This document shows, piece after piece, positions 23,301 through 45,723 of a stretch of DNA of 64,000 nucleotides; the stretch's first letter is position 1, and each line of letters starts with the position of its first letter. A program made the position numbers and the translations under genes. The notes beneath the pieces were generated by a model. The model was not told where the DNA came from. It saw only the letters and a program-made list of their open reading frames with translations, and did no database searches. The DNA lies in the IMG/VR virus record IMGVR_UViG_3300045999_010033, positions 124,001 through 188,000 of that record, one strand, 5' to 3'.

Positions 23301-24002
23301 ATTTGATGGAAAATCCCGCATAATCGGCTCCCAATAGTGCCTAAAATTATCCGCTTGGTTACCTATAAAGTGAAATTGAATTGGATATCCTTTTAACTTT
23401 CTTGCATATTCAATAACTTCTGCTTGATTTTTTCTTGGTGTAAAAAGACCCACATTTATAACGTGCCTAACATTCGGGTCTAAACCTAATCCGATTAGTA
23501 TTTCTTCCCTACTACGTGTTTTTGTTTTAGATTCAATTGGATATTCTACCAATTCAGTTGGAATACCCAATACTTTAAATTTATTTACCTGATAATCTGA
23601 AACCATTAAGAATCTATCAGGAAAATGCAATTTACCATTAATATCAAATCCGGAATCGTGAGATGTTTCTATAATTTTATACTTCCTATCTTCTTTATAA
23701 ATTCTGAGAGCAAGTTCGTATGGAATAAAATATTCGGGTAATTCTTGAAAATGAATTATATCGGGGTTTATACCAACTATTTCATTTAGTATCCAATTTT
23801 TATCTTCACCCAATGTAATCAATCGTTTTCCAAGTATAGATTCGATACGATTTCGTTGAACTACTAATTTTCCACCGGTATGATTATCCCATTCAATACA
23901 ATATATCTCATAATCATTTATGAGAGATTCTATTTGTTTATAAAGATATTGAGGTTGCCCACCGGTTGATAAATGTGGCGTTATAAAAAGTAACTTTTGC
24001 AT
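20340..24002 (-). CDS. multidomain protein: GT4 glycosyltransferase + putative GT-A-like domain + two FkbM-family SAM methyltransferases
   Basis: 1220 aa; FITPHLSTGGQPQYL, NVGLFTPRKNQ, ETMPLVIREA (EX7E); FkbM1 VFDIGANVG...EPN...IKIDVEGAE; FkbM2 VVDLGANVG...FEPS...LKIDVEGYE. Confidence 0.85.
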   Translation of the reverse strand: MQKLLFITPHLSTGGQPQYLYKQIESLINDYEIYCIEWDNHTGGKLVVQRNRIESILGKRLITLGEDKNWILNEIVGINPDIIHFQELPEYFIPYELALRIYKEDRKYKIIETSHDSGFDINGKLHFPDRFLMVSDYQVNKFKVLGIPTELVEYPIESKTKTRSREEILIGLGLDPNVRHVINVGLFTPRKNQAEVIEYARKLKGYPIQFHFIGNQADNFRHYWEPIMRDFPSNCKWWGERSDVDTFYEMADLFLFTSRGHSTDKETMPLVIREAIGWNIPSLIYNLDVYLGYFDKYENIQYLNNIDSDVNSEKIVEILGLKKNENIETNSKNKIFIIDTYATTDVKLNLLRDCIKSIKPMRCPIMIVSHCTLPGDIVSSVDYHLYDSDNRFNVSHNYAYDINEDFSILQNLNYSHEFPIIRSMRLALNSAKSLGYDHFYFCEFDHKYSKKGIEQIQLLENEMIKEEKEFVFFYPPKAVFGDIVGQYYETSFFIGKTESFLNQFNSYFPIDLEIYNQNFASQFPNCLEYFFYKCFNQNKVLLIKNYVKDYFFDSQINISSYQSIKYEILLDEEKTAYLIITTNDLIEYDFEIQLSDKKVDSFLYQNNKKYKIVKLNDSCTIKIKTFVNKSLLETKVIEYNSNDIQLYSNAGQIKFNNRDNKEKMKLPIDLKFDENENKFNIVYLENIDKHLKLCIKDVDSKACIYSMSLPPANSGAWFWTIPLPKHVIDFKNHPNFSGFLIEYYNENEQLLEFKELKLKDIPIKKPELNISNTEPIFLNYEEFFIDGIYDSYDLDNCKVVFDIGANVGLWTKYILSRNAKKVYCFEPNKKALLHLEKSLKNDKNITIIDKAIYKENASLKFYINEENSLISSLIAESGHSPSYDVSAITLEEAIKNSNEEKIDLIKIDVEGAEFGIIDTLSKEIVEKIDSFLIEYHDFYFENGMGKVENMIKKLKELGFKVEQSTVKNTKFIYASKIKKNYWLNKNQQIKLYDLYNFSEDFTWDKMWIGLMDGSNHMFKEMHFTYDEYTNGCIYERFDCKIEDGDIVVDLGANVGVFSNSAYYKGASKIYSFEPSKIAFECLIRNKPINSEIFKMGVSNKNGFENIFLNSTDDTMCGTFANEGQISEFVPVTTLDSLFENNVFEKIDFLKIDVEGYERKVLEGISDENLSKVKKVSLEFHGNILNEDDSKYIMDRMTSTGFSTFQLFLGDGTLRIYNFWK

Positions 24003-24083: not shown

Positions 24084-24335
24084 TTATACATATGGTGATG
24101 GTGGTTTCCACTCATCGGTTAATAGTATGTCAGATATCTCTTCTATTGTATATGGGCCTTCTTTAGTTTCCAACAAATCTAAAAACCAAGGTTCTATCTC
24201 AGTATTCCACTTTACAAAAGTTTTAGTTCCATTTATAGATTTTCTGATTGTGTATTGAGATTCTTCGCAGACTACACTAAAATCTACTTTAGGTAGTTCT
24301 TGCACATTAAATATTATATATTTTTTTAATTCCAT
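24084..24335 (-). CDS. small conserved protein (83 aa), paralogue of 32027..32284
   Basis: Start moved to MELKK. YIIFNVQELPKVDFSVV...TKTFVKW...TKEGPYT aligns with FIIFNVSELHKIDFSQV...TKTFIKW...TKEGPYT. Confidence 0.75.
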   Translation of the reverse strand: MELKKYIIFNVQELPKVDFSVVCEESQYTIRKSINGTKTFVKWNTEIEPWFLDLLETKEGPYTIEEISDILLTDEWKPPSPYV

Positions 24336-24339
24336 ATCT

Positions 24340-25098
24340 TTATAATCCAAATCTTGTTTTATCAGCATCGTAGTTTTGTGTCAACTCTGCATCTGTCAAT
24401 GCTCTATTATATACCCTAAATATGTACATATTTCCTTTAAAATATTCAGCGTCAGCAGGAATGGCTGCTAGAAGAACCGGATTAGCGTTTAAAGTCATTG
24501 TATTAGGTATATTAGTGTCAGCCGCTCTCTGTACTGAGTTTCTAATAATCTGTCTATAAGGGGATGTTCCTGTTCTTCTTCTAAATACAAAATATGCATT
24601 TTGATTTATCAACCCGCTATCTGTAAATTGTATCCTTTGGTTAACACTATCAAAATAATACGTGTCAAAATATGGAGTATGAGCAAATAAACCACGTATA
24701 TTTTCAGTTGCTGTAAATCTAAAACTAGTACCTCCTACCGCTTGTGTCGGTTTTATTACCATTTCTATTGTACAGTCTGCTGTTATACCAAATGTGTTTG
24801 AATTAGGTCCTGTAGCATGATCATTAGTACCATCAAAAACTATCGCTCCTCCACTCTCAGTACTGTAGGTAGGTCCATTTACAAGAGTAAAATTATTACC
24901 ATAACCACTTATATCAGTCCAAGTAGTTCCTGATCCGGGATAAGAAGATGCATTTCCTGCATCTAAATATAATCTAAGTCCATCTGTTACTATTGAAGAT
25001 ATTGGTGGTATGGGTAAACTGCCTAATCTACTTGTATCCGTTCTCGGATATAATCTATCTCCAAAACTTCCACTTTTTTCTTGAAACGCTCTAAACAT
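24340..25098 (-). CDS. LamG / concanavalin A-like lectin-fold virion protein (paralogue 7)
   Basis: IVTDGLRLYLDAGNASSYPGSGTTWTD...FRVYNRALTDAELTQNYDADKTRFGL. Confidence 0.8.
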   Translation of the reverse strand: MFRAFQEKSGSFGDRLYPRTDTSRLGSLPIPPISSIVTDGLRLYLDAGNASSYPGSGTTWTDISGYGNNFTLVNGPTYSTESGGAIVFDGTNDHATGPNSNTFGITADCTIEMVIKPTQAVGGTSFRFTATENIRGLFAHTPYFDTYYFDSVNQRIQFTDSGLINQNAYFVFRRRTGTSPYRQIIRNSVQRAADTNIPNTMTLNANPVLLAAIPADAEYFKGNMYIFRVYNRALTDAELTQNYDADKTRFGL

Positions 25099-25107
25099 AA
25101 GTATTTT

Positions 25108-25512
25108 TTAGAAATCTCCTTGCATTGCAAATACACTACAAGACACACTCGATGATAGTGCGGTTACACCTACTTGTACGCGTGAGCCCGAATTAATTTG
25201 AAAATCCGAATAAGATGTTACCACTCTATAAGAACCAGTAACTGCAGTTACGGTAAATACAGGAATTGGTATTTCATCGAATATTCTAGGGCTCGCTCCT
25301 GCGGTATTTGTTACAAACACCATTAACGATCCAGTAATTGTGTTTCCTGTAAATTTAACTCCTATTTGAGTAATCTTAGACCCGCTCGCTCCGGCTGTAA
25401 CTAAAGTTGTTAATCCTGCAGTAACTCCGGTTCTATCTGTATATGTACCCGAAAGATATGCTTGTGCCAAATTCGGTGTTAATGCAAAAATTGGTGATGT
25501 GTTTTGTGGCAT
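25108..25512 (-). CDS. hypothetical fibre-associated protein (134 aa)
   Basis: MPQNTSPIFALTP N-terminus, beta-rich; between fibre and LamG genes. Confidence 0.7.
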   Translation of the reverse strand: MPQNTSPIFALTPNLAQAYLSGTYTDRTGVTAGLTTLVTAGASGSKITQIGVKFTGNTITGSLMVFVTNTAGASPRIFDEIPIPVFTVTAVTGSYRVVTSYSDFQINSGSRVQVGVTALSSSVSCSVFAMQGDF

Positions 25513-25527
25513 AAAAATTGTGTTTTA

Positions 25528-25535
25528 TATAAATA
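25528..25535 (-). promoter_or_regulatory. TATTTATA putative late promoter
   Basis: Exact motif in a 27-nt gap. Confidence 0.55.
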
Positions 25536-25539
25536 TATA

Positions 25540-28218
25540 TTAATAATTGTAGAACATATATAGTTTTGCTCCTGCAGGTATAGGTTCTGCACCTATTATA
25601 CTACCAGTTATTGTCAGGCTCCCACTTATATCTAATTGGGAATTAAGTGCAGTTTCTTTTCCAATTCCAACACGAGATTGTGATACAAATAATGCACGTG
25701 TTCCGTATTGTCCGATTCGGACCGTATTATCGGAAAACGCTTCCATTATAGGAAGACCTGCTATTGTATTAACACTAAATAGAGATCCGGTAAAGCTATC
25801 ACTAACACTAAATAGTCTTCCCGAAACACCATCAACCGTCAATACATTAGAACCACTGCCTATAAATGCCGATGCGGTAGATGAGGCCGACACTATTAGA
25901 CTACCGGTTATAATCGCTCTACCAACATATGGAAATGTAGCCCCAGCACCACCCGGCGCCCAAGAGGCAGATACTGCAAATGATGCAGTACCGAACAATG
26001 AACCGGTTATGCTTCCACTTACACTTAAACTACCAGTTACGGTGTGTACGTCGGAAACTACATTACCTATTCTAACCCCGGTGTTAAGTACTTGGAGTTC
26101 AATTGAACTACCGGTAATAACAGTGAGTGAACCGGTGATGATTGTATTGCCGTTCACATCGAGTTTTGCGTTGGGAGATGTTGTTCCTATACCTAAGTTA
26201 CCTGTACTAGAAAAGATATAGTTAGCATTATTACTATTACCTGCTAGGAAATATAAAGGTATGCTAGTACCTATCGAACTTATATAGTTACTGGTTGGCC
26301 CGCCACCTCCTGCTAATAAAAGGCCGTAGCCAGAATCTGTTATTTTAATTGTTCTATTTCCTGCTGTGCTGACGCTTCCTATCTGCAAATTACTATCGGG
26401 TGATGTAGTTCCTATACCTACGTTTCCTTCTATAATCATACCGGATGTTGGTGGAGCAGTATCACCATAAACGGATCCCACTGAAACACTTGCCACCGAT
26501 AATCCGGTATATCCGTTGCCTGAGTTAAGCATTCCAAATCTGGAAAATCCGGTGGTACTATATTGTACTCTATTTTGTCCAGTATCTCCTCCGATAGAAA
26601 ACGCATTAGTACCTGTAAACCTGCCGATTCCTGCTACTTCTAGTTTTTGATTAGGAGTCGTTGTACCAATACCAACGTTTCCGCTTCCACTTATGAAAAA
26701 GTATTCAGCTCCAGCAGAACTTTGAACTCTCATTAAATTATCGGAAGCTACACTACCACTAATATGCAAAGAAGCAGTAGGAAATCTAGTACCAATGCCT
26801 ACTCTGGCAGACCCCACGGTTCCTCCTACTGAATCTATTGTTAATACCGCATCGGTAACTGCGGTAGCAGATGTGTTAGAATTATTATTTAATAAAATGT
26901 GTATCTTTCCACTAGCATTCGCTCCTTGTCCATGTCCATCCGTTCTTTCAAAAACAAGTGCAGATTTTCTATAATTGGAATTTGCAGGCTCAACGTACCC
27001 AAAAGATATTCCTGCTATTTGAGTGTTTGCTATTTGAGATCCAAAACTAGAGACTACCCCCGCAGCTCCTCCATTTACATCTAATTTATATTGAGGAGTT
27101 GTAGTGCTTATACCGACGTTTCCATTTGTTCTTAATATAGTCATTCTATCGGTCAAAGTCCCATCTCCTGTAGAAAAAACTAACCCCGAAATAGCAGAAG
27201 ACTCAGCAGTAATTGCTGCTTGTTTTACCGTGCCCCCAGTGCTCAATATAATATGAGGAGTTGCTGTTGTTGGATTTGTTGTATACGCAATCTCTAGCTT
27301 TGCCCCAGGACTTGTTGTACCGATACCAACATTACTACTTGAACTTATGAATATATTAGTCGCACCCGATGCACCTTGATCCTGAATAGATCCAGTTGCA
27401 ATTGTCGTTGTACTATTGAATTTAGAAACAAAGTTAGTTACACCTGTCGTAGATACCGATGTTCCACTACTGCCACTGCTGCCACTACTGCCGGTTGAAC
27501 CACTACTTCCACTACTTCCTGCTGTCCCGCTACTTCCTGCAGTTCCGCTGCTGCCGGTTGAACCGCTACTTCCGCTACTTCCTGCAGTTCCGCTGGTCCC
27601 GCTACTACCACGCGTGCCACTAGTTCCGCTACTTCCGCTGCTGCCGGTCGAACCACTGCTTCCGCTGCTTCCTGCAGTTCCACTGCTGCCGGTTGACCCG
27701 CTACTTCCACTACTTCCTGCAGTCCCGCTGCTGCCGCTACTGCCGGTTGAACCACTGCTTCCGCTGCTTCCTGCAGTTCCACTGCTGCCGGTTGACCCGC
27801 TACTTCCACTACTTCCTGCAGTTCCGCTACTGCCGCTACTGCCGGTTGAACCACTACTTCCGCTGCTACCTGCAGTTCCACTAGTACCGGATGTTGCGGC
27901 AGTATACGATGTTCCATTTATTATTAGTGAACCTGATATATTAACAGATCCGGTAAATTGGTGTGTATTGGATACTATTGTTCCAAACTTTGTAGAACCA
28001 CTTACATATTCAGTTGATGAACTTATTATTTGTGTTACGATAGTTTGCGCTGTGAGTGTTCCACGAACCGTAAAATTGTCCGCAGAAGATGCGGTTAACG
28101 CAACAGATGCAGTTCCTAAGAGAGAACCAGTAATACCCGCACTTACATTAAGAGAGCCGGTTATTTGTGAGCTATTAAGAGCTATTACACCATTTCTGGC
28201 TATAAATTCATTTGGCAT
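25540..28218 (-). CDS. tail fibre (892 aa) with a Gly-Ser/Thr block and repeated GNVGIGTTxP shaft motifs
   Basis: MPNEFIARNG start; several (N/R)(V/L)GI(G/S)T(T/R) repeats; C-terminal LFSV.D...GSLFSVN.I.GLPI.E.FSD module shared with the 2301-aa fibre. Confidence 0.8.
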   Translation of the reverse strand: MPNEFIARNGVIALNSSQITGSLNVSAGITGSLLGTASVALTASSADNFTVRGTLTAQTIVTQIISSSTEYVSGSTKFGTIVSNTHQFTGSVNISGSLIINGTSYTAATSGTSGTAGSSGSSGSTGSSGSSGTAGSSGSSGSTGSSGTAGSSGSSGSTGSSGSSGTAGSSGSSGSTGSSGTAGSSGSSGSTGSSGSSGTSGTRGSSGTSGTAGSSGSSGSTGSSGTAGSSGTAGSSGSSGSTGSSGSSGSSGTSVSTTGVTNFVSKFNSTTTIATGSIQDQGASGATNIFISSSSNVGIGTTSPGAKLEIAYTTNPTTATPHIILSTGGTVKQAAITAESSAISGLVFSTGDGTLTDRMTILRTNGNVGISTTTPQYKLDVNGGAAGVVSSFGSQIANTQIAGISFGYVEPANSNYRKSALVFERTDGHGQGANASGKIHILLNNNSNTSATAVTDAVLTIDSVGGTVGSARVGIGTRFPTASLHISGSVASDNLMRVQSSAGAEYFFISGSGNVGIGTTTPNQKLEVAGIGRFTGTNAFSIGGDTGQNRVQYSTTGFSRFGMLNSGNGYTGLSVASVSVGSVYGDTAPPTSGMIIEGNVGIGTTSPDSNLQIGSVSTAGNRTIKITDSGYGLLLAGGGGPTSNYISSIGTSIPLYFLAGNSNNANYIFSSTGNLGIGTTSPNAKLDVNGNTIITGSLTVITGSSIELQVLNTGVRIGNVVSDVHTVTGSLSVSGSITGSLFGTASFAVSASWAPGGAGATFPYVGRAIITGSLIVSASSTASAFIGSGSNVLTVDGVSGRLFSVSDSFTGSLFSVNTIAGLPIMEAFSDNTVRIGQYGTRALFVSQSRVGIGKETALNSQLDISGSLTITGSIIGAEPIPAGAKLYMFYNY
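27460..27890 (-). repeat. (Gly-X-Y)n Ser/Thr block
   Basis: GTAGSSGSSGSTGSS units; 9-nt periodicity; boundaries approximate. Confidence 0.95.
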
Positions 28219-28264
28219 ACGGGTATTATTTTAGTTCCACTATCCCTAAAAATAATGTGTCAGA

Positions 28265-28272
28265 TATAAATA
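28265..28272 (-). promoter_or_regulatory. TATTTATA putative late promoter (892-aa fibre)
   Basis: Exact intergenic motif. Confidence 0.55.
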
Positions 28273-28285
28273 TAAAATTCCGAAG

Positions 28286-28462
28286 TTAAACCTCTGCAAT
28301 ACGATATTTTCTGCCACTTGTATCTGCGGAATCTAATTCTTCCATTTTTTGTTGGGCTTCTTCTAAAGTATCAAATTCCCATATAGGGTCATTTATTTCT
28401 AATTTTTGAACCCAAATTTGCTCGTTGTCGGGAATGAATTGCATTTGTATTTGATAAATCAT
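28286..28462 (-). CDS. small hypothetical protein (58 aa) missing from the ORF track
   Basis: Hand translation: MIYQIQMQFIPDNEQIWVQKLEINDPIWEFDTLEEAQQKMEELDSADTSGRKYRIAEV*; fills the gap in operon orientation. Confidence 0.7.
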   Translation of the reverse strand: MIYQIQMQFIPDNEQIWVQKLEINDPIWEFDTLEEAQQKMEELDSADTSGRKYRIAEV

Positions 28463-28489
28463 ATTAGTTATTTTTTTCGTTTATAGATA

Positions 28490-29176
28490 TTATGATAGTC
28501 CGAATCGGGATTTTAGAGCGTTGTAGTTTTGAAGGATTTGTGATGCAGATAATCCTACATTATATAGTTTAACTATTGATATTCGTCCTGTGATATATGT
28601 GTGAAACCCTGCAAAACCAACAGTAATAGCTTCATTTGATGCTGTCCACGGTCCGGATGCAGTCGATGTTCCAATACTAATTGTATTTAGGTAAAGTGAG
28701 TGTGTCGTACCCGATGTGGTCGCACATATATGATTCCATCTATTTAATTCTAACAATGGAGTTGTTGGATATATTGATGGATCGGTTCCTCCATATCTTT
28801 GCCATAATAATCGTCTATCGGCTGCGTACCATAATCCGAACGTTCTGTTATTACCACCATTACCACCGGTGCCCACTATTCTAACCCAATCAGATGGACT
28901 TGAGGTAACATATATCCAAGATTCAACTGTTATGTCGGTTGTAAATTGAGAAGAAATTGATGTTGAGTTAATGTAATCGTTAGTTCCATCGAAAGAAATA
29001 CTGCCTCCATTTCCACTATCAAACGTAGGACCATTTATCAAAGTTCCATTATTTTGATTAATCGTTATATCATTCCAAATCGTATCTGTTCCGATATAAC
29101 TATTTTTATCCGCAGCATCAAGCGCCAAAACTAGTCCGTTTGTGATAACTTGTTCAGGTCCAGCTATTTTTCCCAT
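28490..29176 (-). CDS. LamG-like lectin-fold protein (paralogue 6)
   Basis: VITNGLVLALDAADKNSY...WNHICAT...LYNVGLSASQILQNYNALKSRFGL. Confidence 0.85.
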   Translation of the reverse strand: MGKIAGPEQVITNGLVLALDAADKNSYIGTDTIWNDITINQNNGTLINGPTFDSGNGGSISFDGTNDYINSTSISSQFTTDITVESWIYVTSSPSDWVRIVGTGGNGGNNRTFGLWYAADRRLLWQRYGGTDPSIYPTTPLLELNRWNHICATTSGTTHSLYLNTISIGTSTASGPWTASNEAITVGFAGFHTYITGRISIVKLYNVGLSASQILQNYNALKSRFGLS

Positions 29177-29186
29177 TTTTTATTTT

Positions 29187-29849
29187 TTAAGTTAATCCGA
29201 ATCGGGATTTTTGTGCATTATAGTTTTGTAAAACTTCGGCATCTGTTAATTGTCTATTATAAAATTGAATACATGATATTGAACCACCCATACCATTGCC
29301 TATATTGAACGTGCTTGCTTGTCCTGAAGGTGTACTTGTATTATTGGGACCATTGGCATTTCCATTTTCAATACCGTTTTTCCATATTGTTCGGTATCCA
29401 TTTGAATTTTTGAATCTAAATGCTAAATGTGTCCATCCTGTCCCCTCAATATTACCAGATCCATATGTATAATAATCATTAGCACCTGAATTTAAATATA
29501 AAAGTGGTGCAACATCAAAATAACTAGCAAAAAGACCCGAATTTAATCCATCAACTAAATACCCCGCACCACCTGCGTTTACACTTACATTAACCCAAGC
29601 AAGAACAGACCATTCTTGTGTTAAATTTGATTGATTTAGTGGATTCGATACTGATGCCAAATCATTTGTTGCATCAAAAACCATTGCATTATTTGAAAAA
29701 CTAGCACCATTAGTTAATGTTGCATTTTTACCATTACCACTCACATCAAACCAAGTAGTCCCACTACCAGGATAACTATTTCTATCGGCTGCATCTAAGT
29801 TCAACACTAATCCATTGGTTACTATTGTTGGTCCGTGATAAAAACTCAT
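29187..29849 (-). CDS. LamG-like lectin-fold protein (paralogue 5)
   Basis: IVTNGLVLNLDAADRNSYPGSG...WTHLAF...FYNRQLTDAEVLQNYNAQKSRFGL. Confidence 0.85.
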   Translation of the reverse strand: MSFYHGPTIVTNGLVLNLDAADRNSYPGSGTTWFDVSGNGKNATLTNGASFSNNAMVFDATNDLASVSNPLNQSNLTQEWSVLAWVNVSVNAGGAGYLVDGLNSGLFASYFDVAPLLYLNSGANDYYTYGSGNIEGTGWTHLAFRFKNSNGYRTIWKNGIENGNANGPNNTSTPSGQASTFNIGNGMGGSISCIQFYNRQLTDAEVLQNYNAQKSRFGLT

Positions 29850-30571
29850 AATCCAAATCTTGTTTTTTGTGCATTGTAATTTTGTAAAACTTCTGCAGCA
29901 GTTAATCCTTTTCCCTTATAAACCGATACGTTCGCAATCCATCCATTATTTGCTTCGGTGGCGTTATCACCATCTATTCCAATATTTAAGTTTCCAAGAG
30001 TTTGCCCCCAACTTCCAGAATCTGTAGCCGTTCCTAAACTAACACCATTAGCATATAGTGTTACGGTTGTACCTATCCTTGATACCGCAAAATTTATCCA
30101 AGTATCAGTAGGTAATCCCGTTGATGTGTTAAAGAAAAGCCATCCTGCACCGTATCCTACCCGATAAACATATATGCTGCTTGTACCTGTATTATTTGTA
30201 CTACCATCTGCTACCTGCCATTGTCCGGTTACCTCTGTGGCTCCAGTATAATAATCACCAATTATGTTGCCCGAAAATATTCCTGTATTAGGTCTTCTAA
30301 ACCATCCGGTTATAGTAAAGTTTCCAGTACCTAATTGATTTATTCCGGTTCCAATTCCTACATTAACGTAATCGTTGCTTCCATCAAACGCTATATATCC
30401 TCCAAAATTTGAATTGTAGGTTGGCCCATTTGTTAATGTTCCGTTGTATCCATTTCCGCTTATATCTCGCCAAGTAGTACCGGCACCCGCATAAGAATTT
30501 CTATCTGCCGCGTTTAACATGAAAACCAATCCATCAGTTACTACTCTTCCTGTTGCGTATTCTACTGCCAT
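29846..30571 (-). CDS. LamG-like lectin-fold protein (paralogue 4)
   Basis: VVTDGLVFMLNAADRNSY...LTAAEVLQNYNAQKTRFGL. Confidence 0.85.
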   Translation of the reverse strand: MAVEYATGRVVTDGLVFMLNAADRNSYAGAGTTWRDISGNGYNGTLTNGPTYNSNFGGYIAFDGSNDYVNVGIGTGINQLGTGNFTITGWFRRPNTGIFSGNIIGDYYTGATEVTGQWQVADGSTNNTGTSSIYVYRVGYGAGWLFFNTSTGLPTDTWINFAVSRIGTTVTLYANGVSLGTATDSGSWGQTLGNLNIGIDGDNATEANNGWIANVSVYKGKGLTAAEVLQNYNAQKTRFGL

Positions 30572-30602
30572 TTTTTGATAACTCCTTTTAATTTGTTATA
30601 GA

Positions 30603-30610
30603 TATAAATA
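30603..30610 (-). promoter_or_regulatory. TATTTATA putative late promoter (within the LamG array)
   Basis: Exact motif in a 42-nt gap. Confidence 0.55.
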
Positions 30611-30613
30611 TTT

Positions 30614-31324
30614 TTATAGTCCAAAACGTGATTTTTGCGCGTTGTAGTTTTGCAGAATTTCTGAATCGGATAATTCACGATTATAGCATTTAACTATTGA
30701 TATATCCGTATTCGTTGCGTATGCTTGAGGTGGTCCACCGGATGGAATGCCTCCTATATAAAAAGTATCCCCATATCCAAAAAAATCGTATGATGATTTA
30801 TTAAATGTACTTGTTGTTATATACTGTCCATTTGAATACGATTTAATAACACCATTTGAATTATATGTCATAACACTGTGATATATTGTATTGGTTACCA
30901 TCGTAACTACACCATAGTGAACCGCACCAACCCAACATTCATTTGTTTTAATTGCATGGTAAATACCATTATTTGAATATAAATAAATTCCACCATGACA
31001 ACCTGCCCTACCTATAACGATAGACTCATCTGATGATGGTATTGATATATATTTGAAAAATGTTTCTATTGTCCAACTTGTTGAGTCAGTTTTTAACACA
31101 CCCTCATTAAATGTGCACACAGCATGGCCAGATGTTGATGATGCTGCTCTAAATTGTATTGCACCATTTGAAAAAGTTGGTGAATTTATCAATGTTGCGT
31201 TATACCCTTTACCACTTAAATCATTCCAAATAGTGCCAGTACCTGAGTAACTATCTTTATTTCCCGCATCTAAGTATAATACTAATCCATCATTGATAAT
31301 ATTTGGTCCACTATTCCCTGCCAT
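30614..31324 (-). CDS. LamG-like lectin-fold protein (paralogue 3)
   Basis: IINDGLVLYLDAGNKDSY...YNRELSDSEILQNYNAQKSRFGL. Confidence 0.85.
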   Translation of the reverse strand: MAGNSGPNIINDGLVLYLDAGNKDSYSGTGTIWNDLSGKGYNATLINSPTFSNGAIQFRAASSTSGHAVCTFNEGVLKTDSTSWTIETFFKYISIPSSDESIVIGRAGCHGGIYLYSNNGIYHAIKTNECWVGAVHYGVVTMVTNTIYHSVMTYNSNGVIKSYSNGQYITTSTFNKSSYDFFGYGDTFYIGGIPSGGPPQAYATNTDISIVKCYNRELSDSEILQNYNAQKSRFGL

Positions 31325-31325
31325 A

Positions 31326-32030
31326 TCATAATAAATTAAAACGTGATTTTAGGGCATTGTAGTTTTGTAAAACTTCAGTTGCCGAAATTGCTCTATTATA
31401 TATTCTTACTACGCTTATATCGCCGGGGAAAAAATTAATACTATTGGTCGCAGATTCATCCCATCTTCGACCTATTCTAATTTCTCCACCCGATTGGGAT
31501 GTACCTGTATATGATAATTGTGTGTTTAATATTCCATTGTTATATTGTATAACTGTTGCACCATTGTATGTTCCAACAACGTGATACCACACATTCAAAG
31601 ATGGTGCAAACCCATCAGTATTTCTCCAAGCACCATTAAAAAACCCAACACAAATATTATACGAGGATGCGGCTCTATTTGTACCGATACTAAAATTTAA
31701 ATTAGATACTAAATCGTATTGCCCGCCCACAACCATTGTAACTTGACCAGTCAAAGATCCAGTAACTCTAAAAAACGCCTCAATACTCCAATTAGATAAA
31801 CTACCGGGATTAGTTGCGGTTGCGTATTCATATACGGTTTTATCAAAGTTAAAATAACCTGCATTTGCGGTATTATATGTTGGTGTATTGAATAGTGTTG
31901 CATTATTTTTACTTACACTTAAATCCGTCCAAGTTGCCCCAGTTCCGATATAACTTTTTTTGTTGGCAGTATCCAAATGCAATATCAATCCACTATTTAC
32001 AATATCCGGTCCGCCGTTTGTTGTACTCAT
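31326..32030 (-). CDS. LamG-like lectin-fold protein (paralogue 2)
   Basis: IVNSGLILHLDTANKKSY...WYHVVGTY...IYNRAISATEVLQNYNALKSRF. Confidence 0.85.
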   Translation of the reverse strand: MSTTNGGPDIVNSGLILHLDTANKKSYIGTGATWTDLSVSKNNATLFNTPTYNTANAGYFNFDKTVYEYATATNPGSLSNWSIEAFFRVTGSLTGQVTMVVGGQYDLVSNLNFSIGTNRAASSYNICVGFFNGAWRNTDGFAPSLNVWYHVVGTYNGATVIQYNNGILNTQLSYTGTSQSGGEIRIGRRWDESATNSINFFPGDISVVRIYNRAISATEVLQNYNALKSRFNLL

Positions 32031-32284
32031 GCTCCAGGCATTTGTAGTTCATGCGTCCATTCAGTTCCTGCAAGTATTTCAATCATTTCGGAATAAGTAT
32101 ACGGACCTTCTTTGGTCGTTAATTGAGATACACACATTGGTTCAACTCCGTCCCATTTGATAAAAGTTTTAGTTTCATCTACCGATTTTTTTACTGTCTC
32201 TACTGAAGTTTCAAGAACTTGAGAAAAATCTATTTTATGTAATTCTGATACATTAAAGATTATAAAATTTCTATTTTCGTACAT
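32027..32284 (-). CDS. small conserved protein (85 aa), paralogue of 24084..24335
   Basis: Aligns with 24084..24335; ATGA overlap with the next gene. Confidence 0.75.
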   Translation of the reverse strand: MYENRNFIIFNVSELHKIDFSQVLETSVETVKKSVDETKTFIKWDGVEPMCVSQLTTKEGPYTYSEMIEILAGTEWTHELQMPGA

Positions 32285-32304
32285 AGTTTTCGTTTTTATT
32301 TTAA

Positions 32305-33018
32305 TTAAATTCCAAATCTTGATTTTATGGCATTATAATTTTGTAATGCTTCTGTTGATGTTAATACTCTATTATATACCTTAGCCAAATAAATATTACC
32401 CGTAAATAACTCTCCAACTGGTGATGAACCAAATCCGGCACCAATTAATAATGGTTGCGTACCATATGTTATTGCTGTCCCTGTTGATGTACTGCTATTA
32501 ACAACATTACTCCCATTCAAGTAAAAAAAACACGCTCCTGTTGTTAAATTATATGTAACAATAATATGATATATTGTATTTGTTTGATAACTGAATGTAT
32601 GATTAACAAAACTATATGTGGAATCTCTATTAAATCCAAATTGTAACTCATTTGTTTGTACTCTCAACATATATGATAAAAATGGTGATGACCAAGGAGC
32701 ATTACTTGCGGGTTTACAAATTATAGTATTATATACGCCTTTTGTTGTCATTTTAAAACATGCTTCCAATGTTAATGTGGTTGCAGGTCTTAAACTTGTA
32801 CTATCAGATATTGACACGTAATCATTAGTACCATCAAAGACAATAGAACCCATATTATCATTCGTAAATGATGGTGAATTAACTAAAGTACCATTATTAT
32901 TTTGCTTACTTAAATCAATTAAAGATGTTCCACTGCCAATATAAGATTTTTTATTAGCACCATCATAATAAAATTGCAAGCCATCGGTTATTGTTTTTGG
33001 TGAATAATTAAATGCCAT
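32305..33018 (-). CDS. LamG-like lectin-fold protein (paralogue 1)
   Basis: ITDGLQFYYDGANKKSY...YHIIVTY...VYNRVLTSTEALQNYNAIKSRFGI. Confidence 0.85.
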   Translation of the reverse strand: MAFNYSPKTITDGLQFYYDGANKKSYIGSGTSLIDLSKQNNNGTLVNSPSFTNDNMGSIVFDGTNDYVSISDSTSLRPATTLTLEACFKMTTKGVYNTIICKPASNAPWSSPFLSYMLRVQTNELQFGFNRDSTYSFVNHTFSYQTNTIYHIIVTYNLTTGACFFYLNGSNVVNSSTSTGTAITYGTQPLLIGAGFGSSPVGELFTGNIYLAKVYNRVLTSTEALQNYNAIKSRFGI

Positions 33019-33019
33019 A

Positions 33020-36000
33020 TTATATTGTTCTAATTATGAATTTGCCAGTCCAAGTTCCTGCTGATGCAGAACCTGTCATTACCATATTTGACCCGGATAT
33101 TATTGATGTAAAGGCTACGCCTGATGTGTTTCCAAAATCAACCGTAGATACATCACTAACAACAGTTGATGCCCCAGACCACATCGCTATAAATTGTCCC
33201 ATTCTTGCATTAGAACCACTCCTAATTGTGTATTCAACAAACATTCCATCGTAAGAACCGGTACTCATACTATAAATTGTAGTTGAACCTGTTATAGATA
33301 CACGCTTAGTTGTATTCAATACGGGTGCAATACTATCTCCCATCAATACCGTATCATCCGAAAATACTTCCAATATCGGAAGACCCGAAATATCATTCAC
33401 AGAGAATAGTGAACCCGAAAGGTTATCAGTAACTGAAAATAGTTCACCTTGGCTGCCTAATACACTAAATATAGATTGAGAAGAACCTGAACCATGTATG
33501 ATTGCACGTTGTACTCCGGAGCCGGATACTAATAGTGTGGATGATGTAAGTGATGTTGCAATTACGCTACCCGTTACATTTAATACACTACCATTAAAAT
33601 TAAGATTTGCTTCCGCAACTGCACTATTTACACTACCATCCGATGTTAATACTCTATTATCTGCAGGTGTCGCTATTGTGGTAAATCCGGTACCACTTGT
33701 TCCTGCAGTTCCGCTGCTTCCTGCTGTCCCGCTGCTGCCACTACTGCCGGTTGAACCGCTACTTCCACTGCTTCCTGCTGTCCCGCTGCTGCCACTACTG
33801 CCGGTTGAACCGCTACTTCCACTGCTTCCTGCTGTCCCGCTGCTGCCACTACTGCCGGTTGAACCACTACTTCCACTGCTTCCTGCCGTGCCGCTGCTGC
33901 CACTACTTCCAGCGGTTCCGCTACTGCCGCTGCTACCGGTTGAACCACTACTGCCCGCACTACCACTGCTTCCTGCAGTTCCGCTGCTTCCGCTACTACC
34001 GCTTGTTCCCGAAGAACCTGCTGTCAATAGATTTGTTCCTACACCTGCTGCTGCTTCTGTTAAATCTATATATGCACCCCTTGCTGCACCTCCTTGTTCA
34101 AAAAATCTTAATTTATTTTGATAAGAATCGATAGTTATACCACTACCAGTGAGTGAGTTATTAGTAGCTGATTTATTTAGTAATATTTCACCACCCTCGT
34201 CACCCGATTGATATAATATACTTAATTTAGTACCATCAAATGTTAAAAGTGATTCTGCGTTCGCTTCCCCTTGAGTTCCCGTTGCGGTTAATATTCTATC
34301 ATTAGCATTGTTTAATATGTTTGCAACACCACTCGTACCGCTGCTTCCGCTGCTTCCTGCAGTTCCGCTGCTGCCACTACTGCCGGTTGAACCGCTACTT
34401 CCACTGCTTCCTGCAGTTCCGCTGCTGCCACTACTGCCGGTTGAACCGCTACTTCCACTGCTTCCTGCAGTTCCGCTGCTGCCACTACTGCCACTGCTTC
34501 CTGCTGTCCCGCTGCTGCCACTGCTGCCGGTTGAACCGCTACTTCCACTGCTTCCTGCAGTTCCGCTGCTGCCGCTACTGCCGGTTGAACCACTGCTTCC
34601 GCTACTTCCACTGCTTCCTGCCGTCCCCGATGTGCCCGAAGTTGCTGCAGTATAAGATGTACCGTTTATTATCAGTGAACCGGATATACTAACAGAGCCG
34701 GTAAATTGATGTGTATTTGATACCAATGTTCCGAATTGTGTGGAACCGGTAATCAATTCGGTCGAAGAAGTAATAATTTGCGAAACTATTCTTTGTGCAA
34801 CTAATGTATCTCTTACCGTAAAGTTATCCGCAGAAGATGCGGTTAGCGCCAGTACCGCGAGTGATGCGGTTTGTGCAAATGATGCGGATGTGGCATTAAG
34901 TGGTGTACCATTTATCCAAACCCCACCATTGTAAACTAATGCCTGTCCATTTGTAGGAGTTGTAATATTTACATCCGATAAATCATCCAGAGTTTGTGTT
35001 ATATTTGTAGCAGCTGAAGACCCACCCGATGTATTTCTAAAAGAACCCGCTTGTATAAAAATTGCTTGTGATGTATTTGTTAAATCACTAGCATTTCCCT
35101 GAACTAATAGGTATCCCGCAAAAATTAATGATTTAGCGGTAAACTCACCTTCTACAAAACTATCAGAAAGTAACGCAGATAAAGCGTTTGCTATTGATGT
35201 ATATGAATTATGTCCGTAGTATATTACTGCACGCTTAGATTCGGGACTATAAAATATTCTTTGAATAGTAACGTTAGGACCAGATACACTTGATAATCCA
35301 TTTCCGTTATCATATTTTGTAGGATCCACTACGGTGTAATAGTTGCCATTATTACTGTCCAAATATATTCCAGATCCAGTTCTATACGCCCTAGCCATAG
35401 ATGCAGTAAGAGCAGGTGTAGCAGTATAATGTGATGGACTATTAGGATTTTGTGAATAATATCCACCTAAAAAGAATCCCGTACCATCTCCTATATTGAT
35501 TCTTAGCGAACCACTTTGGCCCGATGGTGTGAATCCATTTACTTTTATCGGTCCGAATGACCTAATAAAATCATTTTGTTGTGTATCACTATTATATGTA
35601 GTTTGTACACTACTTGCGTATCCTGTTATACTTGAATAGTTTGGATGTGTAACTAATCCAAGAGGTATTGCCTCCTCGTATTGAGTTTCATCAAAATAAG
35701 AAGTTTGTTGGAAGATTACTCCTGTCCCATCAACGTATAAATAAGTCGTTTGTGATGAAGTTATGTATTGTGCAGATGCAGTATAATCATTCCAATTAAC
35801 GTAAGTAATAATAGGATTGATTTCCGACCCGCTGGTGGCATTCATATTATTAATGATACCACTACCTTTTTTAACATATATTACACTGCCACTAAAAGAA
35901 ATACCTCCACCATATAATATTCCCGAACTTAATCCACCTTCTAACCATTTGAATTTGGTTAAGTTACCATTTTGACGATAATATAAATCATATCCGGTAG

Positions 36001-39000
36001 CTGTGTTAGAAGCAGATGTAAATAAGTACGATGCAGTTATGTTATTGGGTCCTGGATCTTGACCTGGATCTAATCTTAAATGTCCTTGTAATGTAAAGTT
36101 AGCAGTTGCATTTAATGATCCAGATACATTAACACTACCCGATAGTACACTTATTCCTATTAAGGTATTAGACCCACTTGTTATTAAACTACCGGTAACT
36201 ATTTGGTTTCCTACACTAACTGATGTTCCTATAAATGTCTGAGACCCCGATACGTTTATGCTGCCGGTTATGGTTTGCGTTCCTATAATCGTACTTGAAC
36301 CCGTCAATCCATAAGAACCCGTTAATTGTTTAGAGTTTATCCAAACACTACCACTTCTAACTAAAAGGTCTCCCGATGTTATTCCATTAATTTTAACATC
36401 ATGCAGTTCATCTAATTCGTAACCATTATCTATTTTTACATATATCGAACCAACAGTCGCACTTACTCTTTCTACATATCCTAGTCTAACGGAATGTAGT
36501 GGCGCTTGTGGTGTGGTTTGTGTGTATTGTCCTGCCGAACTACTTAAATATACAAGTCCGCCGGCAGTTAATCCTAATGTGTTTAATTCATTGAGTGGAC
36601 CTTCGGTTTGTACGAATCCCTCCTCTCCCGAAAGTATTTGTTCTGCTACAAATCCTAATGTATTTGCCGAACCCAATTCAGCTGTCGCAGACGCACGTTT
36701 TACTGAAACACGATTTCCTTGTGAACCAAAAATATAAACTACAGTTCCTTTTGTTAATGTTGTCGCTTCTGCGTTAAATGCACGTATGAATAATTCTTCA
36801 CCAATTGCCAAGTTTACATTTCCACCTTTCAGTCCGAGATTCAATGTTCCGTATCCATCATCCCACCCCAATCTACCTTCTGCCTTTGGTTGGTCAGAAC
36901 CGGTAACAAAATTAATTACACTTGCGTTATTAATTGAGCCTGATATTTGAAGATTTTCAGAATACGATGCGGACACCGCTCGTAATGCCCAACTTGCAGT
37001 ACCATATAATGAGCTTGTAATATTTGTCGCATTTATAGACCCGGTTACATTTAAAACCGAACCATCAAATGTTAAGTTAGCTTCGGCATTAGCACTATTT
37101 GCACTACCATCCGATGTTAGTATTCGATTATCTAAAGGATTTGATATTGTATTAAATCCTGTACCGCTGGTGCCTGCACTTCCACTACTTCCTGCAGTTC
37201 CGCTGCTTCCTGCTGTCCCACTGCTTCCGCTGCTTCCACTGCTTCCTGCCGTTCCGCTGCTCCCTGCTGTCCCACTGCTTCCACTGCTTCCTGCCGTTCC
37301 GCTGCTTCCGCTGCTTCCATCGGTTCCGCTACTTCCACTGCTTCCTGCCGTTCCGCTGCTTCCGCTGCTTCCATCGGTTCCGCTACTTCCACTGCTTCCT
37401 GCCGTTCCACTGCTTCCGCTGCTTCCATCGGTTCCGCTGCTTCCACTGCTTCCACTGCTTCCATCGGTTCCGCTACTTCCACTGCTTCCTGCAGTTCCGC
37501 TGCTTCCACTGCTTCCTGCCGTTCCGCTGCTTCCGCTGCTTCCATCGGTTCCGCTGCTCCCTGCTGTTCCGCTGCTTCCACTGCTTCCTGCAGTTCCGCT
37601 ACTCCCTGCTGTCCCACTGCTTCCGCTGCTTCCGCTACTTCCATCGGTTCCGCTGCTTCCACTGCTTCCTGCCGTTCCGCTGCTCCCTGCTGTCCCACTG
37701 CTTCCGCTACTTCCATCGGTTCCGCTGCTTCCACTGCTTCCTGCCGTTCCGCTGCTTCCGCTGCTCCCTGCAGTTCCGCTGCTGCCGGTTGCTCCTACTG
37801 CTGCTATCCATTGAGTTCCATCCCAACGATATATGTCGGTATCGGATGTATTATAATATAAAGAGCCACTTTTGAATGAACCGGTCGGACTTGAACTATA
37901 ATTGGGTAATTTAAATTGCGTTTCTGCATCAATAGCAGATGCTGTCAAACTTCCTGAAAGTGAAAGTGAGCTTGTAAATATTATTGTATTTACATTTACA
38001 GAAAATTCAGCTCCACCCGATATAGATACTGATCCGGTAAATTGATGTAAATCACTCCCACTTACTCCGAATTTAGATGAACCCGTAACAAAACTGATAG
38101 ATGATGTAATAGTTTGGACATGTATTCTTTGAGCAACTATTGTATCACTAACATTTATCGAACCGGTTACCACTAATGTATTACCATCAAATGTTAAATT
38201 GGATTCGGCAACCGCAGTATTGGTAGTTCCATCCGATGTAAGTATTCTATTATTTGCTGGATTTGAAATTGTATTAAATCCTGTCCCACTCGTACCACTA
38301 CTTCCGCTGCTTCCGCTGCTTCCACTACTTCCTGCAGTTCCGCTGCTCCCTGCTGTCCCACTGCTTCCGCTGCTTCCATCGGTTCCGCTGCTTCCACTAC
38401 TTCCTGCAGTTCCGCTGCTTCCACTACTTCCTGCAGTTCCGCTGCTCCCTGCTGTCCCACTGCTTCCGCTGCTTCCTGCAGTTCCACTGCTTCCTGCAGT
38501 TCCGCTGCTTCCGCTGCTTCCTGCAGTTCCGCTGCTTCCTGCAGTTCCGCTGCTTCCTGCAGTTCCTGCCGCTGCTATCCATTGAGTTCCATTCCAACGA
38601 TATATGTTTGTATCACCTATATTATAATATAATGAACCGGTGCTAAATGATCCCGATGGGTTAGAGTTGTAAGTTGGTAAAGTAAATCCGGTTGCAGCAC
38701 CAATATAAGATGATGTGAAACTTCCACTAATTAACATTGAACCGGTAAAGGAAATACTATCAATATTTGCAGTGAACACATTCCCAACACTACCCGATAT
38801 ATTTATCGAACCAGTTACTTCGAGTCCTCCACTAATTTGAGTATTCGTGTTTACTTTGAATCCATATGCAGGGTCTACCGAGGCAGTAACACTGCCTGAT
38901 GATATTCTTGAAAGGTTTAATCCTACTACACTTGATGCGGATATGTTTGTTATTCCTGCACCATTTCCTATAAATGAACCAGAGAATGAACCACTAAATA

Positions 39001-45704: not shown

Positions 45705-45723
45705 TTTGTTTTGTTTTGTTTTA

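Follow-up and report, generated by a model that had tools for sequence, protein, structure and literature searches.

Divergent LamG-domain paralogues and a linked small gene in a phage fibre block point to exchangeable binding modules

Introduction

Why would a phage carry seven genes for lectin-like proteins that agree at both ends and differ in between? This question is raised by a 64,000-nt stretch of the virus record IMGVR_UViG_3300045999_010033, referred to here as the window. An earlier note, made from the sequence alone, had described seven LamG/lectin-fold paralogues in it, and proposed that these are interchangeable carbohydrate-binding tips that dock on a common site. Little is known of host recognition in aquatic uncultured phages, and the LamG module is a common one. 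Here, we examine the array, its distribution and its genomic setting. New points are a linked gene for an 85-residue protein, a fibre C-terminal domain that precedes the arrays, and the presence of arrays of 1–12 copies in other contigs.

Results

The LamG gene array

All seven minus-strand open reading frames are located where they had been reported (Table 1; G1 to G7), and encode proteins of 220–252 residues. Each of them matches Laminin_G_3 (PF13385, gathering score 27.6 bits), with scores of 37.8–81.7 bits and E-values from 2.7e-9 to 8.2e-23. Searched with a profile of the seven proteins, the 221,095-bp virus record yields exactly these seven and zero others. The six genes described as nearly tandem are present, as is the separate one at 24340, but they do not form an uninterrupted run: a gene for an 85-residue protein is located within it (32027–32284). 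Neither this gene nor the conserved fibre C-terminal domain described below appears in the earlier note. The LamG pattern is found at 476 or more IMG/VR loci and protein searches yield thousands of matches, with members of the subfamily coming almost only from viral and metagenomic contigs in our searches.

Table 1. Features of the LamG array and its surroundings in the window, in order of position.
Feature	Coordinates	Strand	Basis or remark
GT1 glycosyltransferase with two FkbM-type methyltransferase domains, 1,220 aa	20340..24002	-	domain matches
Second small-partner copy, 94 aa as listed	24084..24368	-	52% identical to the 85-aa copy
LamG paralogue G1, 252 aa, longer N-terminus	24340..25098	-	PF13385 37.8 bits
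134-aa protein between 892-aa fibre and G1	25108..25512	-	ORF
Second collagen-like fibre, 892 aa	25540..28218	-	ORF; 46% identity over 76 aa to giant fibre
Small ORF between G2 and 892-aa fibre, 58 aa	28287..28463	-	read from sequence
LamG paralogue G2, 228 aa	28490..29176	-	PF13385 81.7 bits; AlphaFold2 pLDDT 92.3
LamG paralogue G3, 220 aa	29187..29849	-	PF13385 46.3 bits
LamG paralogue G4, 241 aa	29846..30571	-	PF13385 44.9 bits
LamG paralogue G5, 236 aa	30614..31324	-	PF13385 45.9 bits
LamG paralogue G6, 234 aa	31326..32030	-	PF13385 62.9 bits
Small conserved partner protein, 85 aa, predicted alpha/beta fold	32027..32284	-	AlphaFold2 pLDDT 78
LamG paralogue G7, 237 aa	32305..33018	-	PF13385 71.1 bits
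Giant fibre protein, 2,301 aa, collagen-like Gly-X-Y	33020..39925	-	PF01391 Collagen, E 2.4e-67, 10 stretches
Conserved fibre C-terminal domain, last ~160-165 aa	33023..33517	-	'ELFSVTD..GSLFSVNDISGLPILEVFSD' segment and beta-rich end

Conserved ends and type-specific cores

The contrast between conserved ends and variable middles is borne out by the alignment. The mean pairwise amino acid identity is 0.46–0.57 in the N-terminal block and 0.62 in the last 15 columns, compared to 0.11–0.27 in the middle portion. The motifs quoted for the two ends hold as approximate patterns, but not letter by letter. At the N-terminus, G4 has LNA, G6 has LDT, and G7 has YDG and lacks the tryptophan, while the C-terminus departs in G1 (QNYDADKTRFGL) and in G6 (SRFNL). 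Twenty columns are invariant in all seven proteins, and the two end blocks hold all of these except N187 (G1 numbering) and Tyr230, the latter immediately before the terminal helix. Thus, no catalytic set common to the paralogues is apparent.

The seven paralogues are pairwise 27–38% identical and are dispersed over the family tree; for both reasons, they represent old lineages rather than the product of a recent expansion. Identity in the core is 0.17 among the paralogues versus 0.51 within the orthologues of G2, and within one orthologue group the core is conserved nearly as well as the ends. At 17 positions the core is conserved in a type-specific manner, and W, R, D, H and Q are frequent among these. 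Each type of paralogue has a conserved core of its own, with aromatic and charged residues, which suggests that different types may bind different ligands. The G2 orthologue group (clade support 100%) occurs on at least five different phage backbones, with 57–71% identity retained among phages whose backbones are very different. Such conservation is unusual for a host-specific receptor binder. G7 is 93% identical to its copy in a related contig (L097).

Fold and structural neighbors

The AlphaFold2 model of G2 (pTM 0.90) is an all-β, ConA-like jelly roll with one C-terminal helix. Together with the PF13385 matches of all seven proteins, it agrees with their initial assignment to a LamG/lectin fold. 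In this model, the conserved ends make up the opening strands of the domain together with its last strand and its terminal helix, the C-terminal motif being an α-helix (residues 211–225). The closest solved folds are the lectin domain of Trypanosoma cruzi trans-sialidase and the Hcn domain of clostridial neurotoxin (Foldseek probability 1.00), both of which are non-catalytic lectin-like domains. The best viral structure matches are the LamG proteins of phages S-PM2 and S-SKS1 and ConA-like proteins of uncultured phages, and the sequence-profile matches are an S-layer domain protein, carbohydrate-binding modules and pentraxins.

The small partner gene

The window contains two copies of the small gene, one within the array and one after G1. 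Judging from the alignment and the start-codon context, the second copy probably starts at the ATG at 24335, a few nucleotides past the G1 stop codon, which would give a protein of 83 residues. The family is large, with at least 2,000 homologues and 421 confirmed IMG/VR loci. Eighty viral loci were fetched independently using the small protein alone as query. A LamG domain adjoins the small gene in 78 of them, with both on one strand and a median of 24 nt between them. The LamG gene is immediately upstream of the small gene at 70 of the 76 informative loci, as it is for both copies in the window. In the opposite direction, 27 of 57 complete LamG arrays have a small gene within 8 kb. Because of this proportion, and since S-PM2 lacks the gene altogether, the small protein is not universally required.

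The 85-residue protein has no match in Pfam or PHROG, and its predicted fold has no Foldseek match with E≤0.001 and no usable match in the ESM Atlas. The best VIA-align result (Z = 5.2) is to RRM/ferredoxin-like folds and is too weak to be informative. None of the searches (Pfam, PHROG, Foldseek, VIA-align) detected sequence or fold similarity to known fibre-chaperone families, and our literature searches found no description of a module combining LamG and small genes.

The gene arrangement recalls known pairs of adhesin and chaperone. In T4/T2 gp37-gp38, lambda Stf-Tfa and Mu S-U, the distal binding part is encoded directly ahead of a small gene, and one general factor, gp57A, serves several fibre proteins. 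By analogy, the small gene directly downstream of a LamG gene could provide one factor for several proteins. The LamG loci differ from these pairs in that one small gene accompanies 1–12 LamG genes, and about half of the arrays have no small gene nearby.

The fibre block

Along the minus strand, the gene order is terminase, portal, capsid, giant fibre, LamG array, fibre, glycosyltransferases, collagen/S74 fibre and sheath. The LamG genes are inside the fibre block, which is located between the capsid/adaptor genes and the sheath: six of them directly follow the 2,301-residue fibre, and G1 follows the 892-residue fibre and the 134-residue protein. The stop codon of the giant fibre is 1 nt before the start of G7. 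The same arrangement is found in Flavobacterium phage vB_FspM_immuto (immuto) and in contigs L006, L011 and L097. In two other contigs, the unit of LamG and small genes is away from fibre genes, among small cyanophage genes in L004 and among queuosine-pathway and replication genes in L010.

The giant fibre ends in a conserved domain with a mean column identity of 65% in an alignment of 18 sequences, for which no Pfam, PHROG or PDB sequence match was found. About 20 of the 80 loci have a fibre ORF with this domain at its end, and its stop is 5–15 nt before a LamG gene. The 892-residue fibre is paralogous to the C-terminal third of the giant fibre and has the LFSV segment in common with it. In place of the 58-residue ORF, the relative L097 has a gene for 56 residues. 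The 134-residue protein has no family match in Pfam or PHROG. We considered that it might be a split-off terminal domain of the giant fibre and rejected this, as the two show no BLASTP similarity (E = 0.87). The fusion of a GT1 glycosyltransferase with FkbM-type domains lies directly downstream of the unit of LamG and small genes.

A promoter-like motif, TATTTATA, is present at 30603–30610, 31 nt upstream of G4, and also precedes the 892-residue fibre, the 134-residue protein, the sheath and other structural genes. Scans for sigma-70 promoters and intrinsic terminators gave chance-level matches only, and the window contains no tRNAs.

The same module in cultured phages

Members of the same subfamily are found within long proteins of cultured cyanophages. 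The last ~220 residues of S-PM2 p176 (1,058 residues) are a LamG module with both end motifs. This protein is annotated as a virion structural protein; the literature searched does not name p176 or say whether mass spectrometry detected it. PHROG 8510 (“virion structural protein”) is matched at its C-terminal end. The module is tandemly repeated within one polypeptide in protein SWZG_00005 of S-SKS1 and in contig L010. The cyanophage modules (S-PM2 p176, SWZG_00005; PHROGs 8510 and 24074) have the same N-terminal block and the same LQNYNAxKxRFGL ending as the window proteins, with 34–38% identity over the whole module and TM-scores of 0.83–0.85. They differ in being fused to the end of a 1,058-residue protein or arranged in tandem, whereas the window has seven separate genes. 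S-PM2 is without the small partner gene, of which the window has two copies.

These fused and tandem modules bear on the proposal that the conserved ends are a docking tag. The ends are equally well conserved in copies where fusion or tandem repetition makes docking unnecessary, and therefore they are not simply such a tag. They belong to the LamG domain itself and are not by themselves a sign of docking. The stand-alone LamG proteins have no evident attachment element.

A cultured parallel to the window is immuto (gp052–gp047), whose capsid protein is 53% identical to that of the window phage. Its gene order, a tail-fibre-like gene, two stand-alone LamG genes, a gene for a 458-residue LamG protein, a homologue of the small protein and a tail fibre, matches that of the window. 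The fibre after the small-protein homologue has the LFSV segment, and all of these genes are upstream of the sheath. Both stand-alone LamG genes are annotated as “structural protein”. Compared to the seven LamG genes of the window, immuto has only two stand-alone genes besides the 458-residue protein; its small protein is longer (113 residues, with an insertion), and it has no giant collagen-like fibre. We found no functional study of gp052–gp047 in the literature searched.

A domain of the same superfamily is found in gp22 of Acinetobacter phages fLi-Aba02/03, annotated tail fibres with a ConA-like lectin domain (PMC11058221). There, it is a single fused domain with no linked small partner described, in contrast to the array of stand-alone paralogues in the window.

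Discussion

Divergent lectin-like copies beside fibres, and a partner gene that is rarely found apart from them, point to a widespread and undescribed kit of exchangeable binding modules. From the observed fold, gene order, linkage and conservation pattern, we infer a location on the virion, a type of ligand, a mode of docking and a role for the small protein. The LamG proteins would serve a freshwater myovirus as accessory binding modules at the distal part of its fibre apparatus, with each type using its own conserved core to recognize a different ligand, most probably a glycan on a surface. All types would have one surface in common, formed by the conserved ends, and there the modules might assemble onto the C-terminal domain conserved in the upstream fibre. 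The 85-residue protein may act on the same surface as an assembly chaperone or adaptor shared by many different LamG proteins. We assign a probability of roughly 0.5 to the reading of the LamG proteins as lectin-type binding modules that are associated with the fibres and share an assembly factor. If they are exchangeable in this way, the size (1–12) and the type composition of an array would be a genomic marker of host range or breadth of adhesion, the orthologue groups would define lectin specificities, and the unannotated 85-residue family would gain a function. As a cultured carrier, immuto makes the question directly testable.

The LamG proteins might instead be decoration or adhesion proteins on fibres, capsid or tail, similar in kind to Hoc, that bind EPS, mucus, particles or the collagen-like fibres of the phage itself, Ser/Thr-rich and possibly glycosylated, rather than a host receptor. 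Such a role would fit the large fusions of glycosyltransferase and methyltransferase that recur beside LamG genes (in the window, near those of contigs L007 and L097, and at 17 of the 80 loci), the abundance of Ser/Thr collagen-like repeats in the fibres, and the conservation of G2 over different backbones, which would suit a generic ligand. We consider it unlikely, though deserving of attention, as most LamG loci lack a glycosyltransferase within 6 kb, and seven deeply divergent types with their own cores are more than a single self-glycan would need. A non-virion role during infection is quite improbable. In this case, the proteins would bind or mask glycans on the host surface, excluding superinfection or sparing progeny from debris, or would be partners of the neighboring glycosyltransferases. 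The position of the unit away from structural genes in L004 and L010 agrees with this, and the small protein could then be an intracellular partner. However, neither a signal peptide nor a membrane segment is present at the short N-termini of the LamG proteins, long proteins with a structural annotation contain homologous modules as covalent parts, LamG genes directly follow fibre genes in many contigs, and the putative promoter motif is common to the array, the sheath and the fibre genes.

We regard an enzymatic function as very improbable. The Pfam clan includes glucanases, one BFVD neighbor is named “hydrolase”, and phages with many depolymerase paralogues are known, so that the array might encode ConA-like glucanases or lyases, acting as polysaccharide depolymerases with differing substrate specificities. 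The invariant columns, however, are almost all in the end blocks, and the cores share no invariant pair of acidic residues. The closest solved folds are non-catalytic domains, and the sequence-profile matches, listed above, also count against enzymes. A single type might still have an activity that its sequence alone would not reveal. There is equally little to be expected of a switching or diversification system, in which fibre tips would be chosen by DNA inversion, a retroelement or recent gene conversion. Conserved 5' and 3' gene ends surround variable cores, the 58-nt 3' ends are 71–84% identical in DNA, and some contigs from lake metagenomes match the ends only, all of which such a system could produce. 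Yet every copy is a complete ORF with its own start codon and in one orientation, the paralogues are too divergent (27–38% identity), contigs from independent lake samples carry the array without a single letter of difference, and rearranged or chimeric arrays within one phage population are largely absent among the contigs examined.

Each of the three mechanisms was considered separately and rejected. For an invertible segment of the Mu G or P1 C type, the genes are all on one strand, and the inverted repeats (18–37 nt, 75–84% complementary) are those expected by chance in AT-rich DNA. For a diversity-generating retroelement, the 221-kb genome has no RVT_1 match, while control genomes were positive, and the region contains no near-identical repeat pair. 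For recent gene conversion or homogenized ends, synonymous identity at the ends is 0.46–0.64, not above that of the core, and the repeats are 60–84% identical.

If the LamG proteins are fibre-associated binding modules, they could form part of a more elaborate plug-in system, a speculative extension that we consider unlikely. The fibre C-terminal domain would display a mixture of stand-alone lectins loaded by the 85-residue adaptor or chaperone, and the conserved gene ends would have a second use as handles for recombination, by which cassettes move between unrelated freshwater and marine phages. Viruses would then have a counterpart to the lectin sets with which umbrella toxins hedge their bets. 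The umbrella toxin particles of Streptomyces carry six diversified lectins for variable surface glycopolymers, which has been interpreted as bet hedging (PMC13274773). The likeness is one of concept, by analogy only: one scaffold with diversified lectin modules, in a secreted toxin in one case and in a virus in the other. The proteins themselves are unrelated, since the UmbA lectins are β-propellers and not LamG domains.

Genomic setting

The source IMG/VR record (221,095 bp) is complete by CheckV. All main genes of the window lie on the minus strand, in the transcription order terminase, portal, capsid, giant fibre, LamG genes with the 892-aa fibre, two glycosyltransferase proteins, S74 fibre and sheath. 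The nearest capsid proteins are those of Microcystis phage Mel-JY01 (54%) and the cultured Flavobacterium phage vB_FspM_immuto (immuto, 53%), and the array DNA also turns up in metagenomes of lake water and fresh water (17 studies). The phage is therefore a freshwater myovirus. It encodes at least three long collagen-type fibres.

Coordinates of the LamG array and neighbouring features in the window
Feature	Position	Strand	Remarks
1,431-aa protein	59600-63895	minus	N-terminal cytidylyltransferase-like region (phrog_395, E 1.2e-14)
Large terminase	56658-58262	minus	
Portal	52183-53931	minus	
T4-type major capsid protein	44070-45773	minus	
Giant fibre, 2,301 aa	33020-39925	minus	collagen-like
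Small gene, 85 aa	32027-32284		
LamG genes G2-G7	within 28490-33018	minus	
58-aa ORF	28287-28463	minus	MIYQIQMQFIPDNEQIW...
Short fibre, 892 aa	25540-28218	minus	collagen-like
LamG gene G1	at 24340	minus	
1,220-aa fusion	20340-24002	minus	GT1 + two FkbM methyltransferase domains
696-aa fusion	17460-19550	minus	GT1 + GT9-like domain
1,394-aa collagen fibre	13219-17403	minus	C-terminal Peptidase_S74 intramolecular chaperone domain; Collagen E 5.5e-97
Tail sheath	9992-12250	minus	

Conserved ends and variable cores

The seven LamG ORFs described in the earlier note (G1-G7) are present, and each scores above the gathering threshold of PF13385 (Laminin_G_3). A profile built from them finds no eighth copy in the 221,095-bp genome. 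The six genes that the note called nearly tandem do form a run, broken by the small 85-aa gene. Pairwise identity among the paralogues is 27-38%. The proposed pattern of conserved ends and a variable core is borne out by an alignment of the seven, in which amino-acid identity falls from 0.46-0.57 over the N-terminal block to 0.11-0.27 in the core and rises to 0.62 at the C-terminus; the quoted end motifs are there, in approximate rather than exact form.

An AlphaFold2 model of G2, built from an 87-sequence alignment, is a beta jelly roll (pLDDT 92.3), in which the conserved N-terminal block forms the first strands and the C-terminal motif an alpha-helix (residues 211-225) after the last strand. 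Since the first and last strands are adjacent in the ConA-like/LamG topology, both conserved ends would form one face of the domain. The closest solved folds are the lectin-like domain of trypanosomal trans-sialidase and the Hcn domain of clostridial neurotoxin, and the top sequence-profile matches are an S-layer domain protein, carbohydrate-binding modules and pentraxins. These structural and profile matches are binding domains and non-catalytic.

The same module also occurs in joined form. In cyanophage S-PM2, p176 (1,058 aa, annotated as a virion structural protein) finishes with two copies of the module, one just before the other. The final copy spans the last ~220 residues and keeps the same ends; its C-terminus (...EVLQNFNALRTRFGL) is identical to the ending of stand-alone LamG proteins. 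SWZG_00005 (960 aa) of cyanophage S-SKS1 and its neighbours contain several tandem copies, and a 533-aa protein of metagenomic contig L010 contains two. In the loci fetched, 219 of 274 LamG domains end at most 5 residues from the stop codon. The ends thus belong to this LamG subfamily as an intrinsic signature and are kept in free and joined modules alike, which weakens the earlier suggestion that they are plainly a docking tag. The common face that they would form may also be used for assembly.

Divergence of the paralogues

The window copies are scattered as if at random over a tree of 113 LamG domains from 18 sources (7 changes vs a shuffled-label mean of 6.9). The fully supported G2 clade also holds copies from four other phage backbones, including a cyanophage-like 186-kb contig and a 358-kb contig, and G7 is matched by a 93% identical copy in the close relative L097. 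G5 and G6 may be old neighbours, the only such pair in the window. In contrast to the window, some phages have expanded one LamG type locally: on contig L043 (IMGVR_UViG_3300017917_003384), five of the 11 LamG copies fall in one clade with 99% support.

Among 81 G2-type sequences, core identity is 0.51 vs 0.56-0.63 at the ends, and core identity across paralogues is only 0.17. Seventeen core positions are conserved within the G2 type only, including W87, D96, W97, R99, R111, W116, Q126, R127, H159 and H192. The middles are thus not subject to drift: each type keeps a site of its own, as expected of modules for different ligands.

Within ±8 kb, the number of LamG genes ranges from 1 to 11 and is most commonly 3 (79 LamG loci). 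Contigs L004 and L011 each have six copies, L006 carries twelve, preceded by a 2,137-aa protein, and immuto has two stand-alone LamG proteins and one longer LamG protein. The array of L097 has three copies vs six at the same place in the window; there, the giant fibre end is followed by a G7-type gene, the small gene, a 200-aa LamG protein, a G2-type gene, a 56-aa gene, a 575-aa protein, one more LamG gene and a glycosyltransferase/methyltransferase fusion.

Contigs, rather than reads, of four lake metagenomes (X3, X4, X6, X10) were aligned to positions 28200-33100. Two independent runs carry the array without differences over the aligned pieces listed. Summed contig depth climbs ~5- to 30-fold at the ends of every LamG gene and is low in the cores; 71-89% of the aligned contigs continue into unlike sequence. 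Hence these lakes contain many other LamG genes that match the array in their end sequences only, at 80% DNA identity or more. End-to-end joints of different window genes come from such foreign LamG genes and were not counted as rearrangements.

The small partner gene

We fetched 80 IMG/VR loci using the small protein alone as query. A LamG domain of the subfamily is encoded on the same strand in 78 of them (median distance 24 nt); the other two are cut by contig ends. In 42 loci the only immediate LamG neighbour is upstream, in 6 it is downstream, and 28 loci have one on either side. S-SKS1 and immuto likewise have the small gene next to LamG genes, as do all of the six further metagenome contexts examined and four contigs from metagenome-assembled genomes. 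In the window, a paralogue (52% identical) directly follows the isolated seventh copy, G1; translation of this paralogue probably begins at the ATG at 24335. Homologues of the 85-aa protein number at least 2,000, at 62-78% identity, and no Pfam or PHROG family matches it. Its model is a small alpha/beta domain (pLDDT 78) with no informative fold match.

When LamG loci were fetched independently, the small gene was within 8 kb of 27 of 57 complete arrays, and S-PM2 has none; the dependence of LamG genes on the small gene is weaker than the reverse. A single small gene accompanies arrays of 1-12 LamG genes, so that its product must act on a feature common to the LamG types.

The fibre C-terminal domain

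Over its last ~165 residues, the giant fibre is 52-75% identical to 16 of the 17 other aligned fibre-like ORFs and 32% identical to the seventeenth. ORFs sharing this end vary widely in length, and about 20 of the 80 loci have one that stops 5-15 nt before the first LamG gene. Sequence searches against Pfam, PHROG and PDB assign the domain to no known family. Its first part, the 'LFSV' segment, recurs near the C-terminus of the 892-aa fibre and in a giant S-SKS1 protein annotated in RefSeq as a baseplate wedge subunit. In immuto, L011 and several other loci, fibre genes that follow shortly after the small gene carry it close to the N-terminus. Fibres usually have a variable tip; a conserved end followed by variable binding modules is the reverse, an arrangement that fits a platform for exchangeable parts.

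At its N-terminus the 892-aa fibre has ~110 residues (...LTASSADNFTVRGTL...NGTSYTAATSGTSGTAGSSG) that are nearly a repeat of a segment inside the giant fibre, so that the shorter protein looks like a duplicate of the longer one's C-terminal third with another end. The 58-aa ORF lies in the sole sizeable gap of the block; the 56-aa gene of L097 occupies the same position, and the 58-aa ORF has no match in the 80 loci fetched by the small protein.

Interpretation

With fold, synteny, linkage and conservation pattern of the array established, the best-supported reading, to which we give a probability of about 0.5, is that the LamG proteins are separately encoded binding modules of lectin type that are associated with the fibres; each type would have a ligand of its own. 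The 85-aa protein would be an assembly factor or adaptor common to them all, with the conserved end of the fibre as the likely platform. Virion location, docking and glycan binding are what we infer in this proposal. It is unlikely that the proteins serve as decoration or bind the phage's own glycans; the type-specific core positions speak for different ligands.

A role outside the virion is rather improbable. One locus is at odds with a fibre function: at L010:5001-6866 (164-kb contig), the small gene and the two-domain LamG protein lie among 7-deazaguanine/queuosine-pathway genes (QueC, PTPS, a radical SAM enzyme, GTP cyclohydrolase I) and a DNA polymerase gene, and no fibre gene of the locus is close by. 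We give very little weight to the LamG proteins being enzymes; the alignment of the seven paralogues has no invariant acidic pair in the core. A switching system is equally hard to credit: the genome has no reverse transcriptase, no invertible segment was found in the array region, and synonymous-site and repeat comparisons give no sign of recent gene conversion among the window LamG genes.

Phages with many receptor-binding paralogues are known, and the homologous cyanophage LamG proteins are annotated. ConA-like/LamG domains in phage fibre proteins have also been described (e.g. PMC11058221). In the searchable literature we found no published description of stand-alone LamG gene arrays, of the near-obligate 85-aa partner family, or of the conserved fibre C-terminal domain preceding LamG arrays. 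The lectin sets of umbrella toxins (PMC13274773) are parallel in concept only.

Other features of the region

The 1,220-aa and 696-aa fusions lie within the fibre block and may glycosylate the Ser/Thr-rich collagen-like fibres. Comparable sugar-modifying fusions adjoin LamG genes in L007 (with a sulfotransferase and APS kinase) and L097, and homologues occur in 17 of the 80 loci fetched by the small protein.

The octamer TATTTATA (coding strand) occurs 17 times on the minus strand of the window. Thirteen copies fall in intergenic DNA, in ~1.5 kb (2.4%) of sequence (plus-strand coordinates 56645, 52165, 50066, 47014, 44000, 30603, 28265, 25528, 17420, 12285, 9970, 9372 and 8306), and 12 of these are 14-46 nt 5' of a start codon. 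Genes preceded by it include the sheath, three fibres, an adaptor-like gene, LamG gene G4 and a 134-aa gene. The reverse complement occurs seven times on the same strand, in each case inside a gene. The octamer is probably a late or structural promoter element.

The 1,431-aa protein with the cytidylyltransferase-like region adjoins the terminase; the core virion proteins reported for cyanophages include a putative cytidylyltransferase (PMC3037559).
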